DNA of 64,000 nt from Oculina patagonica (taxonomy: Eukaryota): contig NC_135761.1 in assembly GCF_052425735.1 (NCBI RefSeq), positions 8,184,001 through 8,248,000 on the forward strand. The letters are read 5' to 3'. Below are positions 20,601 through 35,600 of this stretch, piece after piece. Positions within the stretch are counted from its first letter, which is position 1; each line of letters opens with the position of its first letter. The translations under genes and the position numbers were made by a program. The notes below the pieces were generated by a model. It had not been told where the DNA came from. It was given only the letters and a program-made list of their open reading frames with translations, and ran no database searches.

Positions 20601-23600
20601 GGTTTCTTGCTAGCTGGGGGCTCCTCTGATAACCTTGAATAGTTAACATCTATAATGAAGAAAAAAGAGAAGTGACAGGCATTTGTATCCATATAAACCT
20701 ACATGGAAGCGAGCGAGCACATAAACTGAAATAAATTAACATAAGCTGAATGCAGACAAATTGCTCTGCAAAATCAGGCCAGCGCCTCCTTTCTGAAAGG
20801 TGAATGGACAAGTGACCCAAAATGAGGCCAGCGCCTCCTTGCTGATGAGTGAATAGACAAGCGTCCCAAAAACAGGCCAGCGCCTCCTTCTGATGAGTGA
20901 ATGGACAAGCGTCCCAAAGTCAGGCCAGCGCCTCCTTTCTGATAACGTCGATCAATCTTAACCAAACATAAATAGAAACTGGCCCAGCGGTCTTGTAATC
21001 AGCGAAAAACTTTATACAAACAGCTACCAATGTTGAAATGAAAGAATCTGCTCGAAGTAAAACAGTATTTCGCCGATGTTCCAGTACACTCTTGCTATAA
21101 AGACTATAAACAGCTTGCCATCTATTGCAAAACGAGCAATTATTCTGAAAGTTTAGGAAAAAACGAGACGAGGTCCAGAACAGTACGATAAATGTGGTAA
21201 TGGCCTTGCATGTACACGAGAAGTGAATACCTAGTGAATTAATAAATCCACTCCGTAAGTCCTGCATGGATTTCAAAAACTAAAGTGAAAACATACCTAG
21301 TTGTTGCCAAACTGACAAAGTAGACCACTATATGGGATTCCCACCCATTTTCAATGCTTCAAAACATGATGAGTTGTAATTAGTCAACCATTTATGTATA
21401 AATAATGCGACTTTATAATCCTCACATCGAGCTCCGTACGGGAAACCATAGCATACAATTTGACACCGCTGTCAATAGGAGCTGAAAATTTTGGGCTATA
21501 TAACATGTAAACTTCAACTTCGTGCTACTCGAATGTAATACTCTGCAAACGAACAACTATCTAAAACCAACTTAACATAGAGCCTTGCTGAAATGACAAA
21601 AACTTTTCCAGACACGTCATACCACAAACGTGTATACATGCACCCAGTTATCATTATGGCGCACTTGTCCACTGTTACCTAAATGGACGCCACATTTTGT
21701 GGCACTAGCATCTGAGCTAACAATACAATAAGACGGGCCAATCCATAATGACTTTTCAAAATCATCCTGTCCAGTCCTCTTCAATACTCAACATGTTTTC
21801 TTAGAGAATAAATTGGGCCAAAGTAAACGTCTAGTGAAATCGTAATCCTGCGCAGCCTCAATGTCCTTGTTGTAATAACTAGTCATAATTCGGGAAATGT
21901 CCTCAAATACTACACCAATGGAAACAAATTTCCCCCAAGCCAGGCTAAACAATTCCCCATAAAACTTTTTTCTGAAACAATTATGAAGACATACAGAAAT
22001 GCGAAGTAAAAATAACCGTCTATCCGAAATAGGAATTGTTCTATAGATAGTGTTCTATACTATACCATTCGAAAATTAACAAGGGTCCACTAAAACTTCC
22101 CGCCATAGCTAAAAAATAAATCTGAACTTCCGTAAACTGGATCTAAGACTGCACAAGAGTAATAATCAATATGGATCAAATTCCCCTCGTCCAGGAATAG
22201 AACAATGTTGACCCCCTTGAATCCTTCAATATTCAGTTCGAGCGACTTGAGGCATGGAATAAAGATCCAACCCAAATGGAAATACAGTAAACAGAAAAAC
22301 ACCTAAACTAAGCGTCACCTAACGAAAAGCAAGCGAAAACCTAACAATATAAATGTGCGATGATCAGGGTGTGAATAGCTATATAGGTGATAGGTAATAG
22401 CCACTTGGACCAAACAAAACCATAAATACTCCCTTTAGAATAGGGAAAAGTGATATTCCCATTTACGCACTAAATCCTTGTTCATAAAAATGTTTATCTC
22501 TTCTTCCATAGGGTTAATTCGAAACACTTAAGGGTAAACCATATAAGAAGGAGCCTTAACTTCTGCCAACCCGGTAAAATGTAAAGGCACTAAATAGCTT
22601 ATCTACAAATCATACAGAATGATGTAAAGATGACACATAGCTTTTGAAAAATTTCAGAGGGAATCTTCTTGAAAGGAAGACGAAAACCATCTAAAACAAC
22701 TGATACAATAATCTCTGAGACGCCTAAAAATAACAGAAATGAATATTTCTTCCCAGACTGCCCTTTTATAACTTGCAACACACCTGGTCTAGTAGAAACT
22801 TCACGCTCATATCTGATTTTTGTGTTACCTCATTCAATTCGTCAAACAGATCGACATTACCAATATCATTTCGATGCCCCATCAATGCGTGCTCCTGATG
22901 CCGGCGGGCTTAGTGGAAGCGGCGCTGCTCCAGTAATGGGAAGTTCAACTACTTTAGTTTTAATGCAGTCTGCAAAAAGTTTCCGAACCTGCAGTCCTTA
23001 ACCCACTGTCCGCCGTTTGAAATAAAAAAAATGACACCTGCAACACATTCTGTTCGGACAAAAAACATGTATAAAATTGACAAGCAATCAATTAGACAAG
23101 ATAACAAAAACGAAATGGGCGGGCGGGCGGGCGGGTTTACAACTTCAATGTCAGCATGGAATGCGAAAGCGAGAGGACTGAACAACTCTGAACAGTCTAT
23201 AAATACCTTATCAAACCAATCAGAGATACCCAAGGGACACGCCCAAGCGGCGTGTCATACACAGCGAAATAAATAACCAAAAACCTGTTAATGAACTGTA
23301 TTGACTGCATACCAGTAGAAAATACATTTACGTTCTAATTCGCTACGCTCAAACGAACGTAAATTATTTTCTTCTTCAATACTGCAAAAAATACACACCA
23401 AGGGAATGATGGTTGGATGCTCAGGCAATCCAACCTACGCGAGACATCACAAAGTAAAAAATATAAGATCCTACCGCGAGAAGGCTAAATTGCTAGTTGG
23501 TTAGAACCTCTTGAGAATACTGCGAAATTAGCGTCCGAATCCGCCTTCTTCTTTTCGGCTGACAGTCAATTCTCTTTGCATCTTCTGACAAGCAAGCTCG

Positions 23601-29600: not shown

Positions 29601-32600
29601 GTTGATGTTTTGTGTTGATATCGATATTGACCTTTGTAAGTTTTTAACGAAGATGTATTATGAAAACTTGGAGTTGTTTGCTGACTGAAAAAAGGAAACT
29701 TCATTAATACGCAGTTTGATGTTCTCACAGCCTTAAGAAGACTCAGCTCCTTGAATAAATATTACACGCACTTGGGAAGTCACTTTATTCGCAATGATTT
29801 ACAAGAAAAATTATTAATTACTTTGGTCATCATAAACAGAAAAAAAATAATCAAAATTTTGTGTTGATCACCAAATTTTCTAATGATGTTTTGTGTTGAT
29901 ATCGATATTGACTTTTGCAAGTTTTTTACGAAGATGTATTATGAAATATTGGACTTGTTTGCTGACTGGAAAAAAGGAAACTTCATTAAAGTGCCTATGA
30001 AGTGAAAATTGTCTTTGTTTAGTTATAAAATTTACCTCTTGAAATACACGATTCCAAAGTTTGAAACGCGTAGGGTTAAAACTATCAATTTTACAAGCGC
30101 TCAAAGTTGTGCCATTTTCACCTCAAAAATGGTCTTTGAATCGCGCGGTCAAAATACCACGTGATACTAATCTCTGACGTCACTTGGGTGCCTCAGATCG
30201 ATTTTACAATGGCGAGAGTGGAGAAAGCAAAGAGAAAACTGCGAGGGCGATTTTGCGTTGCTGGTGACCCTAACCAGCAAAGTTGTAAAAATCCTTCGTT
30301 CACGCCAGGTAAACGAATGCATCAGTTCCCGTCTGATCCGGCTGCGAAGGCAAAATGGGTCCAGTTTTTCACACGCACGATTTCAAAGATCCCTCCTCGA
30401 AGTACACGTCGCTTTGTTCGGCACACTTTGGAGTTCGAATGGGGCGATGCAAATTTCCCTTTCGTAAACGGTCGTTGCCATTTGAAACGGTCGATGCCAT
30501 TTCTCAGAATGGTCGTTGTCATTTGAAACGGTCGATGCCATTTCTAAAACTAGCCGAGCAGACGACAGCCCTCGTGAATAGCTCGTACGCTGTTGGCACG
30601 CTCGGACGTCACTTCCGGGCAGTGTTGTTTATAAGATGGCGGAGCAATCCACGTGCGCAAGAGTTGAGCCAGCTGAAAGAGAACGAACCCATTCTTCTTG
30701 TGCAGAAACAAAACAAAAATCAATTAAGAAGCCAACGAGGTGGAACTCCTTTATGCAGTCAGTTGCGGTGAGTTTGTTTTGTATTTCCCGAAATATTCAA
30801 TCATTTTCAGCCTGGATAAAGTGCTTGTTCAAATATTCTAAAACATGTTGTTTCCCTTACATCCTTTACATCCGATTACAAGTGATTAAGATTAAGTGAT
30901 CAGAAATATCAGTGAAAAATAAACCGCATCTAAAATTTTCGTTTATGTCATTACCAAATATCTTATCTATAAGTGTTGCACTTGTATTCGTTATTTTTGT
31001 AGGCCTTGAAATTACATTCGATATAAGCTGATATAGTTTCCTCGTACTTTGTATCATTCCACAGCCAGATGTCAAGGAACAACTTGGAAAGGGGGCAGGA
31101 ATCGGGCAGGTTTCCAAAGTGGTTGGCAATATGTGGAAGAAATTGCCGACAGACAGACGAAAGGTTAGTTATAAACTTCTAACATTGCGAATGTTTGTGT
31201 ATTAACCCTGCCCCATTTCAGTGGACTGCTATGTGGTTTACGTGGCTAACTTTGTAAGGACCGAGAGTGTAAATGTTCTCGTCAAACTTTCCAATTAAAA
31301 GTATTTTAGGTTATGAATGTTGATCTTGAATCAAGCTGGGACCTCAAGCTGAATGTCAATTTTGTAATATAATGTTCAGACTTGTTATTTTTCCAGACAG
31401 AACTCTTAAATATACCTAGGGGATAGCAAGGCCCATTATAATGTACCAATTAATTTAACCTAAATTTTAATTAGAAATAACCTACATGTGGCGGATACAG
31501 GTTTTGAGGAAAGGGAGGGGGGGGGGGGGGCAAGGGGGTATTATCCTCAAAAAATTATGATAGAGGGTGAAAAAAACTGTCTTTGCAATCTAGTTTATAT
31601 AAAAAATAGGGGGGATCAAAAATACACGATTGTTCCCTAATATATTTCCCCCCTTTTAAAATATCATGCTATGATCTTCATAGGACTGGAAAGATAAAGC
31701 ACAGAGCTTGAGGGAAGACCTTGATATGGGAATAGCAGAGATAAAAAAATGTCCAACCTGCAGCACCCAGTTCACAAGGGAGAAGGACTTCAAATACCAC
31801 CAGAAAGGTTGTCATGAGTGCATTTGCGAGGAATGCAATGAATCGTTTGACCATGAGCAAAAGCTACAGAGGCATAAAGACAAGAAACATAAAAACAGCT
31901 ACAAGTGTGATCATTGTCAAAAGACTTTTGCAGAGAAACGAAATCTTATAAGACACCAAAAGTCACATGTTTAATTAACCTATCCTGCATTTAATGATTT
32001 TAACTGGAGATGATTTGAAAGGACTATTGGATCAATCTATAATACATAATTGTTTTTGTTTTTAAATTATTATTATCGATTTTTGAAATTAATTGTGGTC
32101 ATTGCAGCACATGTACATGTTACTGTTCAAACCAAATTTTAAATCATTACAAATGTTGTGTTAGACTTTAACAGGAAAGAATGAATTAAAACTTATTTAC
32201 AATGTCAAAACCTCAATCTTTTTAATAACCTTGTTGTTCAGGGGCAGATCCAAGGAGAGAGGTTTTCAATCTAGGCAATTTGCCTTAAGTGAATTTCCCT
32301 TTATGTTAAACATTATGCGAACATTCCATTGTTTATTCACTAAGATTTCTCTGTTTTCCTATTTTTTCCTTTGCATGTGCTTTGTCTTCGATTTCATAGT
32401 ATGGGACCCAGACTTCTATGCCCACTTTCAAACAACTTCAAAACCCTTTCTGTGCACTCAGGAGAAAGGTCACGGAAATTAGAGGTCTCCAGAGTTTCAA
32501 GTGAATGGTTGTGGTCCCACTCTATGTCCACAGCACAACATCCCTCGCTGTCTATTTTGACTATCATCTGAAAGGGGCAATTGGTGTTCTTTACTCTGGC

Positions 32601-35600
32601 AGATGGATTCAAGTACAATTTCTGCTGTGGATCTTTACTTGGACTCCAGTTGCGAGTGTTGTGTTGGCATCTATAGTAGTTTTGCAACACATAGCCTGAT
32701 TGGTTCCGGGAGCGGGCGGTATTCTCCCATCCGGCCCGCTCACAGCGGGCGGTATCCGTTGCGAGATGAATCGTCGAGTGAATTTTCCGCGCGAAATCAT
32801 TTTGCAGTGTTGTACGAACGAACACATGAAAGATTTGCTCTGCAAAATCGAAATAGCTGCTCACCAACCGTTGTAAAGGTGAAAAGAAAAAATAGAAGTG
32901 GAATTAAAGGCCTCGAAGTTCTTCTAAAGGCGAGTATTCATTTCTTTATCGACAAAATCGAGTTCTAGTTTCGTAGTTTGTGGTTGTTTGTTATTTTGCA
33001 ATCATTTTCACGCCATTACGGTACGCTGAAACGGTTTTAAACTTCAATTTTGAGTAAAAAACTGCCTTTTTATCGGCCACTTTTTGCCAAAACAAAACTT
33101 TAAATGCTATCATTCAAGAAAATGTGATTCTTAATTACAAAACAGTCAAAATAATTCTCGCAATATTGTGCCGTACGTCCAAACTACGCATTTCATTCAG
33201 TTTCACTTTCGCACTGTTCATCACAAAGAAATTCTGCTGGGAATCAACGCTGAGTTTATTAATTCGTTAAAAACAAGTATGCATATCTGTACCGAAACTG
33301 TCTTTAAGTCAGATAATATTTTTTAGTCCGAGAATTACTATCCTACGAACACAATTCCTTTCAAAACATTCATCGAGAAGCCGGAATCGATTTGAAAGTG
33401 TTCAGTTTTGTCAATGATATAAATGCTTTGCCTCGATTTTACATTTATGCCATATTTACTACTTCAATTTCTTTTATTGAATCTCTTCAGTGTCAATTTA
33501 ATATGCTAAACCTTTCTGTTAGTTCGGTTCATTTAAGCGAGGCTATTTTATTCCGAATTTATAAATAACAAACAGGCAGCATTTTACACTCTTACTAATC
33601 CGTCAAACGACACAACATTGAAATGACGCGCGTATGCAAACAAAGATTTTGTGAAAAAATCTTCCTAGGTTTCTTTTAAAAACAAATAAAGTAGGAAAAA
33701 AATAAAAACGTTATTCACCAGCCTCGGTCGGTCCGTATTGGGAAAAACTGTGCCCTCGGTCTTGGTATCCAAGACCTTGGGCACAGTTTTTCCCAATACG
33801 GACCTCCCGGCTGGTGAATAACCTATATTTCTTGGCGACCTTTACGATGGCATCGACCGTCATGAGAAATGGCATCAACCGTTTTCAATGGCAACGACCG
33901 TTCTGAGAAATGGCATCGACCGTTTCAAATGGCAACGACCGTTCTGAGAAATGGCATAGACCGTTTCAAATGGCAACGACCGTTTACGAAAGGGAAATTT
34001 GCTGGGGCGATACTAAGTAAATAAATGAAGGCCGGCCTTATGCGTGCCGATTTAAAAGATCTATTCTCGAAGTACAAGTCGCTCTGTTTGGCACACTTTG
34101 GATTTCGAAATGGCCGATAGTAAATAAATGAAGGAATAGTCCGGGAGCTAGGAGCACAGAAATGATGTTTTGCACTTCAAGAGTACTGAAAAGGTTTGAC
34201 AACGGATTTCAATAGATTAAAATCTCCTCTTTCACGCTAGGTAGTTTGTGGTTTCAAATTGTGGTATACGTTTTGAGTTATAGCTATGTTTTTGTCAGTC
34301 GGTACAGGTCAAAAAAGGTCTCGCATGAGAACGAGGCTGAAATTGCCACTCAATTTATTCGTAGAAACTTATTCAATAAGAAAATTAATGTTATCCAGAT
34401 AACTGATAGGACTCTATGAAAGTCGATTTTAGGAAAAGCACCACGGCTTGCAAAGAAATCACGTGATATTTGTTCTCGTTTTGTGTGACGTGTCACAGCA
34501 TTCTCATTTCTCTGATACATAGGAACAGAAACTTTTCGCTCACGTTCACCTGCAAACCATTTGCTCTTTCAATTTGCTCTTTCCACACTAAAGAAAGGCA
34601 ATATTTTTAAAATTTATCACTTGCTGAAGTTAAAAATTTGGTGAAAGCCGTTAAAGTGGCGCCTTTTATTGGAAGCCTCCCTTTGGTGCTAAAAGGAAAA
34701 CGAACAGTGATAATAAACTTGGTTAGGAAAAAACAATATTCGATAAATTTCCCCTAACAGAAAATATCTAAAACAGTTGCTGTCGATCGGGTACAGTAGA
34801 AAATAAAGTTAAAGATCGAAATTGGTGCTTAAAAATATTCAAAGATTTTATTATACTTTGTTCTCCATTTCGTTCGTTGATGACATCAAGAATGTTACAA
34901 ATTGCAAATAACAACTAGTCACATTTTGTTCTTTAAAATGTCTCTACTCGAGAGCGTGTTTGAACTGCAAAAGTTGTTTTTAAAGGTTTGATATTCATTT
35001 CGTGTTGTTTTCACAACACGACAACACGAAGCAATGACCAAATGAGGGAGAGTGGTGGAGGGTAAAAAAAAAGAACTATTGTACACTATTAAGTGGACAT
35101 TTGGCCAAGTCACTGCAAGTGTCTTAACAGTGGTGTCCGAGATTGCACGGGCTTGGCAAAAAATTTGCGATGTAGCTGCTTGTAAACTTCCATGCACAAA
35201 CATACATTTCCTTGAAGATATCTTTTAAGAAACAAAAAATAAATGATATTTAAGACTGTTACGTTCATTACGAATCCTGCCTGCTCTATTCCCTCAGCCC
35301 TCGTACATGAAAGATGTATAAGCGACGTAGCCTCGAGATTTTTTCCAAAACTTTGAGAAGAAGATCTACTTTATGATGCAAAAATGTTCATTATAGCAAT
35401 TTTCCCCCGTGAATGTTTTGATGTGCCGAGCGTTTGCCTGGGACCGTGTTTAGTGACCTGTAGCCTCAGCTTCAGCGTTTTGACATAATTCTTCGTTTCA
35501 ATCACGACGTCCCTGACTACTTTTCAGGCACCAATACAGTAGGCACCAATACAGTGAGTAGATTGTAGCCAGCCATTTTCATTCTGGGATAAATTTTCCA

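Follow-up and report, generated by a model that had tools for sequence, protein, structure and literature searches.

A mutator-like element of the coral Oculina patagonica, internally deleted, and a putative family-wide accessory gene encoding an HMG box and three zinc fingers

Two-gene members of the Mutator superfamily are already known, e.g. MuDR, Mutyl, and Hiun. MuDR of maize contains long terminal inverted repeats (TIRs), generates a 9-bp target site duplication (TSD), and carries two convergent genes, mudrA and mudrB, each located just inside a TIR. To our knowledge, the mudrB product, MURB, lacks any recognised HMG box or zinc finger and occurs only in Zea. The mudrB gene is apparently needed for integration (PMC6446971). 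Extra open reading frames (ORFs) with DNA-binding or anti-silencing roles are also carried by other Mutator-like elements (MULEs), namely mutB by Mutyl and vanB and vanC by Hiun/VANDAL21, but these are fungal and plant families, and no HMG box combined with C2H2 zinc fingers has been reported for them (PMC6446971). Here, we describe a MULE of 3,554 bp located at positions 30449–34002 of a 64,000-nt stretch (hereafter, the window) of the genome of the coral Oculina patagonica (contig NC_135761.1, referred to as C4, at 8.2 Mb). It contains a small spliced gene for a protein with an HMG box and three zinc fingers (the HMG-ZnF gene) on the strand opposite to a transposase remnant. The family to which it belongs resembles MuDR in superfamily, TSD length, long TIRs, and the convergence of two genes, whereas the conservation of its accessory gene, which consists of three phase-0 exons, extends from corals to amphioxus; this gene was set apart by description from mudrB as well as from the extra ORFs of Mutyl and Hiun/VANDAL21. 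As far as we know, the HMG plus C2H2 domain content makes homology to mudrB unlikely.

Three further systems are relevant for comparison. PIF/Harbinger transposons are cut-and-paste elements encoding a separate small DNA-binding protein and provide the closest analogue for how the present element may work; in zebrafish Harbinger3_DR, a Myb-like protein reportedly binds subterminal repeats and recruits the transposase. They differ in superfamily, in their 3-bp TSD, and in having a Myb/SANT domain instead of HMG and C2H2 domains, and membership in PIF/Harbinger was rejected because the transposase of the present family carries the Pfam MULE domain. Sleeping Beauty and RAG1/2 borrow host HMGB1, whose box bends DNA at the recombinase sites. 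HMGB1 is a host protein lacking sequence-specific fingers, whereas the HMGB-type box described here comes from a gene of the element and is joined to three fingers. Pack-MULEs are, like the window copy, non-autonomous MULEs with a gene-like insert between family TIRs, but the insert found here is the second gene of the family rather than a host fragment, and the copy does not qualify as a Pack-MULE. As for animal MULEs, the cnidarian Ghost sub-group includes MuDR-1_NV of Nematostella, for which a 177-bp TIR, one ORF, and no zinc-finger type are listed (Dupeyron et al. 2019, PMC6446971), and the same 2019 survey detected no MULE transposases in Branchiostoma (PMC6446971). The Nematostella member of the present family (184-nt TIRs) and MuDR-1_NV, which were compared by TIR length only, may be the same or sister families. 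No description of an HMG plus C2H2 accessory gene for MULEs was found in the literature, including the 2019 survey (Repbase and Dfam entries were outside this comparison), in agreement with the first-pass annotation of the window, which knew of none. This type of accessory gene therefore appears to be new, in a superfamily in which two-gene elements as such are not.

We consider it probable (at roughly 75%) that the window element derives, by internal deletion, from a MULE family of marine invertebrates that carries two genes, with the small HMG-ZnF gene as its helper. The window copy itself is a dead, non-autonomous, internally deleted derivative, and the interest lies at the level of the family, which apparently acquired an HMG box of its own, joined to sequence-specific fingers. 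The ends of the copy are clear. Its TIR arms (30449–30545 and 33906–34002) are 97 nt long and 97% complementary, matching the long TIRs of MULEs, and a 9-bp direct repeat without mismatches (TGGGGCGAT) borders them at 30440–30448 and 34003–34011, within the range of MULE duplications (8–11 bp, typically 9 bp). Because seven miniature inverted-repeat transposable elements (MITEs) of the same family in this genome also have 9-bp TSDs (perfect in four, and matching at 7–8 of 9 bp in the other three), the repeat is a real duplication rather than a chance one. The clean TIRs and perfect TSD noted in the first-pass annotation are thus borne out.

The HMG-ZnF gene lies on the plus strand. Exon 1 (30636–30767; residues 1–44) begins with an ATG located 187 nt from the element end and terminates at a GTGAGT donor, exon 2 (31065–31163; residues 45–77) encodes the core of the HMG box, and exon 3 (31684–31974; residues 78–173 and the stop codon) encodes the last HMG helix and the three zinc fingers. 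All three exons are phase 0, the intron borders are GTGAGT..CACAG and GTTAGT..CATAG, and translation confirmed that the exons join as a stop-free ORF of 173 amino acids (aa), as had been proposed. Exon 2 shows 100% aa identity to the copies found in Pocillopora and Porites. Exon 3 matched Pfam zf-C2H2 (PF00096) in three stretches (E = 1.4e-11, 44.6 bits versus a cut-off of 25.2); the first finger is of the C2HC type, with C120 as the fourth ligand, and the other two are C2H2. The HMG profile score of the window protein itself comes from exon 2 alone (Pfam HMG_box, E = 0.014), and the full-length score comes from the Porites harrisoni homologue P0157, which differs from the window protein at six residues in total and at a single one within the box. 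P0157 exceeds the gathering score of HMG_box (PF00505; 29.4 versus 25.4 bits, E = 1.1e-6) over residues 33–90, which span all three exons, and also passes the cut-off of HMG_box_2 (26.8 versus 22.4 bits). The earlier description of an HMG box split across three exons and followed by three zinc fingers therefore stands. In an AlphaFold (AF2) model of P0157 with a predicted local distance difference test (pLDDT) score of 73.7, HMG helices at residues 35–51, 59–70, and 73–92 are followed by three beta-beta-alpha fingers. Among solved HMG sequences, those of HMGB1/2/3 boxes come nearest to this box, and they include the HMGB1 chain present in RAG complexes (5zdz family). When the model of the complete accessory protein was used as a Foldseek query, only generic zinc-finger arrays were matched. 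The HMG box of the window protein has R35 at a position where every complete homologue compared (i.e. the sequences covering this position) has Gly.

Of the convergent transposase gene, two minus-strand pieces are left in the window. The first (32699 to 32418) corresponds to residues 113–206, a putative WRKY/FAR1-like zinc domain, with 98.9% aa identity to the transposase of a metagenome contig (L008). The second (32415 to 32359) comprises the last 18 codons and the stop codon and shows 100% identity in tblastn to residues 263–280 of the second-exon product of L008. The claim that only the N-terminal zinc domain was kept is thus correct as to the zinc domain and incorrect as to 'only'. Between the two pieces, at 32417, alignments to L008 (in which 1218–3730 correspond to the missing segment) and to the Pocillopora and Porites copies place the breakpoint of a 2,513-bp internal deletion, by which the catalytic domain of the MULE transposase, the transposase intron, and the putative SWIM-like region were lost; the breakpoints have one base of microhomology in common. 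All RNA runs diverge at 32417 into a longer form. Two 30-nt RNA strings that continue past this point had no match in the Oculina genome at up to three mismatches, and the longer form is therefore not present in the Oculina assembly. A 157-aa minus-strand ORF seen in this region is a chimera, the first 57 residues of which are read through into an unrelated repeat (32697–33835). A zinc DNA-binding domain of the WRKY-GCM1/FAR1 type is characteristic of the N-terminus of MULE transposases. The zinc-domain remnant scored below the cut-off of Pfam FAR1 (E = 0.03, 15.5 versus 28.1 bits), and the top fold matches of its AF2 model (pLDDT 69) were WRKY domains, with weak Z scores of 3.0 and 2.5 and 26–33% identity.

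Protein searches also recovered this small protein from Pocillopora meandrina, Porites harrisoni, Nematostella vectensis, Exaiptasia diaphana, and Branchiostoma. The Pocillopora copy (L006; about 7.5 kb) contains both transposase exons, with 96–97% aa identity to L008. In the Porites copy (L012), the gene faces transposase residues 140–625 and exon 2, and in L008, where a TIR is present, exon 3 of the gene faces a 625-aa ORF and a 280-aa ORF. The Nematostella element (L010 and L011) is 6.6 kb long, with 184-nt TIRs and a transposase of 76–82% aa identity, and the Branchiostoma element (L013; CM033048.1, 19.70 Mb) is about 7.7 kb long, with 269-nt TIRs, a TSD matching at 8 of 9 bp, and an annotated 830-aa MULE transposase of 60.6% aa identity. 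L009, L014, and L015 are truncated copies keeping a TIR and the gene; Exaiptasia has a truncated copy. The 625-aa ORF of L008 matched Pfam MULE (PF10551; E = 2.7e-12, 47.4 bits versus a cut-off of 27.6), and precomputed MULE-domain matches also exist for the transposases of L012 and L013. A C-terminal SWIM zinc finger is common, though not universal, in MULEs; in the 280-aa second-exon ORF of L008, a SWIM-like CxC...CxH motif is visible, and no Pfam match was obtained at E = 0.01. A full element of this family is about 6.6–7.7 kb long and encodes an accessory protein of 165–230 aa and a two-exon transposase of about 830–900 aa containing a putative WRKY/FAR1-like zinc domain, a MULE DDE domain, and a putative SWIM-like motif.

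The position and structure of the HMG-ZnF gene are constant in these elements. A family TIR lies upstream of the gene in all nine loci examined, and its ATG is located 187–200 nt from the element end in seven of eight. Intron positions and phases are identical in every lineage, with three phase-0 exons split between SVA and P/K-DV and between RRK/M and DW. Every full or near-full member examined (L006, L012, L008, L010, and L013) has the HMG-ZnF gene and a MULE transposase gene in convergent orientation, and the coordinates of L006, L010, L012, and L013 reproduce the MuDR-type layout, in which each of the two genes lies just inside a TIR. Because the same exons and introns recur in all lineages, and the ATG distance from the element end in seven of eight loci, a one-off capture is ruled out. 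These comparisons show that the HMG-ZnF gene is the family's own conserved accessory gene and not the cargo of the window copy. The suggestion of an element-encoded accessory gene in a mudrB-like arrangement is accordingly supported by homologues between the same TIRs, opposite the transposase, in Pocillopora, Porites, the metagenome contig, Nematostella, and Branchiostoma, as well as by the identical introns and by the pattern of substitution.

Between corals and Nematostella (L010), the gene shows a nonsynonymous divergence (dN) of 0.19–0.20 and a synonymous divergence (dS) of 1.0–1.2, i.e. an omega of 0.16–0.19, and over pairs from all lineages, pS is 0.63–0.90 (saturated) compared with a pN of 0.19–0.35. 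In an alignment of 11 HMG-ZnF proteins, no zinc ligand varies, and the same is true of the base-contacting positions (-1, 3, and 6 of the helix) in finger 1 (R109/D112/Y115) and finger 2 (H134/K137/R140). Finger 3 has R163 and N164 without variation and R167 in at least 90% of the sequences; its position -1 (E161) falls below that level. The HMG-ZnF protein is thus under long-term purifying selection. Among the young coral copies, the dN/dS comparison is uninformative.

Several members of the family have features of their own. The clear MULE of Branchiostoma, with both an annotated transposase and the accessory gene, contrasts with the non-detection in the 2019 survey. The two Nematostella loci L010 and L011 (OW051993.1, 12.28 and 12.33 Mb) are 21-kb stretches lying 43.5 kb apart that are identical at 21,268 of 21,269 bases. 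They take in the complete MULE as well as the end of a gene resembling polyketide synthases, and the pair reflects either a segmental duplication of very recent date or a duplicated piece of the assembly. A Tara metagenome scaffold (L007, 291–3375) contains a copy about 72–86% identical, with frameshifted accessory exons and only the C-terminal region of the transposase, adjoining a CLN3 gene, and represents an older lineage of the family in a coral or other host.

The TIRs of the family have a common layout, in which ACGGTCGWTGCCAT occurs four times after a terminal GCAAWTTTCCSTYTCGTAA, at about positions 20, 39, 61, and 80, and this four-repeat layout is kept in the Nematostella, Exaiptasia, and Branchiostoma copies. 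In the left TIR of the window copy (30449–30545, plus strand), the conserved terminal 19 nt (GCAAATTTCCCTTTCGTAA) are followed by ACGGTCGWTGCCAT copies with their first letters at 30468, 30487, and 30528 and, near 30509, by a degenerate one; the right TIR region (33847–34002, minus strand) contains three copies of a 41-nt subterminal unit. Coral TIRs are 82–86% identical to the Nematostella TIR and 87–88% identical to the Branchiostoma TIR, and the element ends are far better conserved across phyla than are synonymous sites. The target sites are likewise constrained. In 29 insertion flanks from Oculina (L016–L042, the window copy, and L003), which include a few duplicates and correspond to about 26 independent insertion sites, the 9-bp duplication reads G-N-C-G-S-C-G-M-C, a palindrome around its central base, with the central CGSCG found in 27–29 of the 29 flanks at each position. 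Three or four of the flanks are identical (TCACATGACGCCGTT), and some MITEs of the family therefore lie inside a larger repeat. The duplication of the Branchiostoma element follows the same rule (AGCGGCGAT/CGCGGCGAT), and the TSD of the window copy follows it on one half only. A palindromic, CpG-rich 9-bp target of this kind is unusually strict for a MULE.

Transcripts of the gene were found in public RNA data, the molecules of which derive from copies 95–99% similar to the window copy, in other corals. In raw poly-A RNA reads (X21), depth is present on the three exons and the 3' untranslated region and is zero in the introns. The junction 31163/31684 is crossed by six of these reads with five start points, in an orientation that fits plus-strand RNA, and also occurs in a contig of a second study (X4, an oligo-dT library). 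Among the X4 contigs, one ends exactly at 30767, and the span 31064–31164 is covered. The other junction, 30767/31065, is read through in a public transcript-derived ORF (P0001). Plus-strand RNA depth extends to about 32130. Both splice junctions predicted from the window sequence were thus recovered in near-identical coral copies, in RNA that is not demonstrably from the window locus. A broken form of the gene seen in X4 is nevertheless abundant and spliced, and the same form is represented by P0001.

The conserved fingers taken together with the conserved TIR repeats form the main basis of a mechanism that we put forward tentatively, as having slightly less than an even chance of being right. 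The fingers would read the four conserved repeats in each TIR, and the HMGB-like box would bend the DNA so that the transposase could pair the element ends; the element would in this way be its own source of the help that Sleeping Beauty and RAG receive from host HMGB1 and Harbinger elements from the Myb-like protein. A stronger version is quite unlikely. It would have the HMG-ZnF protein, and not the transposase, set DNA specificity, with the fingers reading both the TIR repeats and the CGSCG target, a design that would have aided both recent crossings among corals and older ones between cnidarians and cephalochordates. If true, the family would be a natural zinc-finger-guided MULE with a built-in bending factor, the specificity of which might be changed by changing the fingers. 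The recognition code of the fingers, read by hand, is presumably close to GACGGRNCG, which is similar only in part to the TIR repeat AACGGTCG and to the target GACGGCGAC and which we take as a lead rather than a result. Both natural genes are small, and together with a MITE of 1 kb as substrate they open to experimental test the contribution of a bending or end-recognition cofactor to transpososome assembly and target choice.

A number of observations weigh against a functional helper encoded by the family and expressed from this element. The deletion junction, the nested-repeat junction, and the flanks of the window copy occur in none of the RNA runs, and the copy expressed in X4 has a GTG in place of the ATG start codon (30636) and a 2-nt insertion in exon 2 (31077) that causes a +2 frameshift. 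In several copies, a damaged accessory gene accompanies a transposase that seems open, and the opposite combination is found as well. Exon 3 of the accessory gene is frameshifted in L008, the accessory protein of L006 has a Cys-to-Ser change in finger 3, and that of L010 lacks one Cys of finger 1. With the possible exception of L013, none of the loci examined has two genes that are both verifiably intact. Such decay of individual copies is as expected for transposon insertions. In the young coral copies, omega is 0.33–1.05 on 11–12 substitutions, a number that gives no power. As for the mechanism, the transposase's own putative DNA-binding domain could be the reader of the TIR repeats, and a complex prediction for the first-exon product of the L008 transposase and P0157 gave a score of 0.00, which is evidence neither way.

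In the main rival reading, the gene belongs to the element and yet encodes a regulator, either a sequence-specific activator or shield of the TIR promoters (anti-silencing, as in VANC of the Arabidopsis element Hiun/VANDAL21) or a repressor limiting transposase expression. We regard this as unlikely, though to be taken seriously, given that MULE accessory ORFs with anti-silencing or DNA-binding roles have been reported (vanC and mutB; PMC6446971). The TIR repeats lie directly upstream of both gene starts (187–200 nt from the ends), so that a TIR-binding protein would also be a promoter-binding one, an HMG box with C2H2 fingers is a common transcription-factor make-up, and DNA methylation may matter to a family with a CpG-rich CGSCG target. 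However, the closest relatives of the HMG box are HMGB boxes of the architectural, non-specific kind, which fits bending better than promoter-specific activation; beyond this, nothing separates a regulator from a cofactor, and the two readings are not exclusive.

Two explanations place the gene outside the business of the element, and both are far less probable. That a host HMG/zinc-finger gene unrelated to transposition was captured in a Pack-MULE-like manner, as the first-pass annotation had offered as an alternative, might be suggested by the non-autonomous state of the window copy, by its inner 2.15 kb (30546–32696) being single-copy in the Oculina genome, and by the unrelated inner sequences of the family MITEs. 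This is the least credible of the readings, as DNA and protein searches of the genome revealed no parent gene (the finger exon matched at best a generic C2H2 sequence, at 38% identity), the gene occupies the same place, with identical introns, in transposase-bearing copies from three coral genera, Nematostella, and Branchiostoma, and a family TIR precedes it at nine of nine loci. Exaptation, in which Oculina now keeps the HMG-ZnF gene as a host gene after the death of the transposase, could account for an intact ORF in the sole gene copy of the genome next to a destroyed transposase gene. We consider this very unlikely, because the copy is of recent origin (the likeness between its TIR arms is 97%, as is its identity to the Pocillopora copy, including the introns), and an intact ORF of 522 nt is therefore expected even without selection. 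The R35 substitution for Gly and the lack of RNA from the window locus in the runs examined also argue against host retention.

The helper gene of a mobile family remains the preferred reading, and the family also appears to have moved between hosts. The window element is 97–98% identical to the Pocillopora copy, with 98.0 and 97.1% identity in the two introns, and about 95% identical to the Porites copy. Insertion sites differ among the Oculina, Pocillopora, and Porites copies, and the host flanks of the latter two found only exon or repeat matches of 66–84% in the Oculina genome. The three hosts represent three coral families. Oculina and Pocillopora are robust corals (Vacatina), whereas Porites is a complex coral (Refertina); the split of the two groups has been estimated at about 415 Myr (PMC6214176). 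Because all three copies reside on large host contigs (64 Mb, 694 kb, and 762 kb), contamination is argued against, and because non-coding DNA of the element is near-identical across these coral hosts, a recent horizontal spread is suggested. The family is thus a strong candidate for recent horizontal transfer between coral lineages.

In the Oculina genome, the TIR has at least 131 candidate matches with 96–98% identity. Most of these copies are MITEs of 0.8–1.0 kb that have only the ends, of about 98 nt, in common with the window element. No intact transposase of the family was found in the Oculina genome, in which fragments are present on C4 only (at 29.13, 32.84, 33.33, 34.99, 35.94, 37.07, and 38.88 Mb); these fragments show 34–88% aa identity and contain stop codons in all but one case. 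The copy at 29.13 Mb (L003), the closest transposase-fragment paralogue (91%), was considered as an autonomous copy and rejected, being cut off by gag-like and long interspersed nuclear element insertions. Because its transposase is gutted, the genome contains no intact family transposase, and its accessory protein has R35 for Gly, the window copy is unable to move by itself. Distant MULE relatives with 23–36% identity are located on C2, C3, C4, C9, and C10. Among them, relatives of the transposase at 35% identity (C3:20858727–20860418, C9:2350504–2352189, and C4:42360473–42362050) have stop-free frames of 1596, 952, and 689 aa, respectively, and are other MULE families or domesticated genes.

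The remaining parts of the window element and its surroundings are as follows. The region between the convergent genes (31975–32358), which corresponds to their 3' untranslated regions, is 96–98% identical to L006, L012, and L008. The 1.14-kb repeat at 32697–33835 is unrelated to the MULE family and has at least 898 candidate copies in the genome, with 82–96% identity. At its position, L006, L008, and the RNA contigs have about 400 other letters, so that the repeat replaces about 394–403 bp of the 5' end of the transposase gene rather than simply interrupting the MULE. It is unclassified and non-coding and ends in a 41-nt near-perfect palindrome (33725–33765/33769–33809). A THAP-like ORF in a degenerate state (Pfam THAP, E = 0.0025) surrounds the MULE (30161–30448 and 34012–34134). 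The flank also contains a diverged tandem duplication, in which 30378–30448 and 34048–34118 are 85% alike, and AGTAAATAAATGAAGG occurs in it twice, 103 bp apart.

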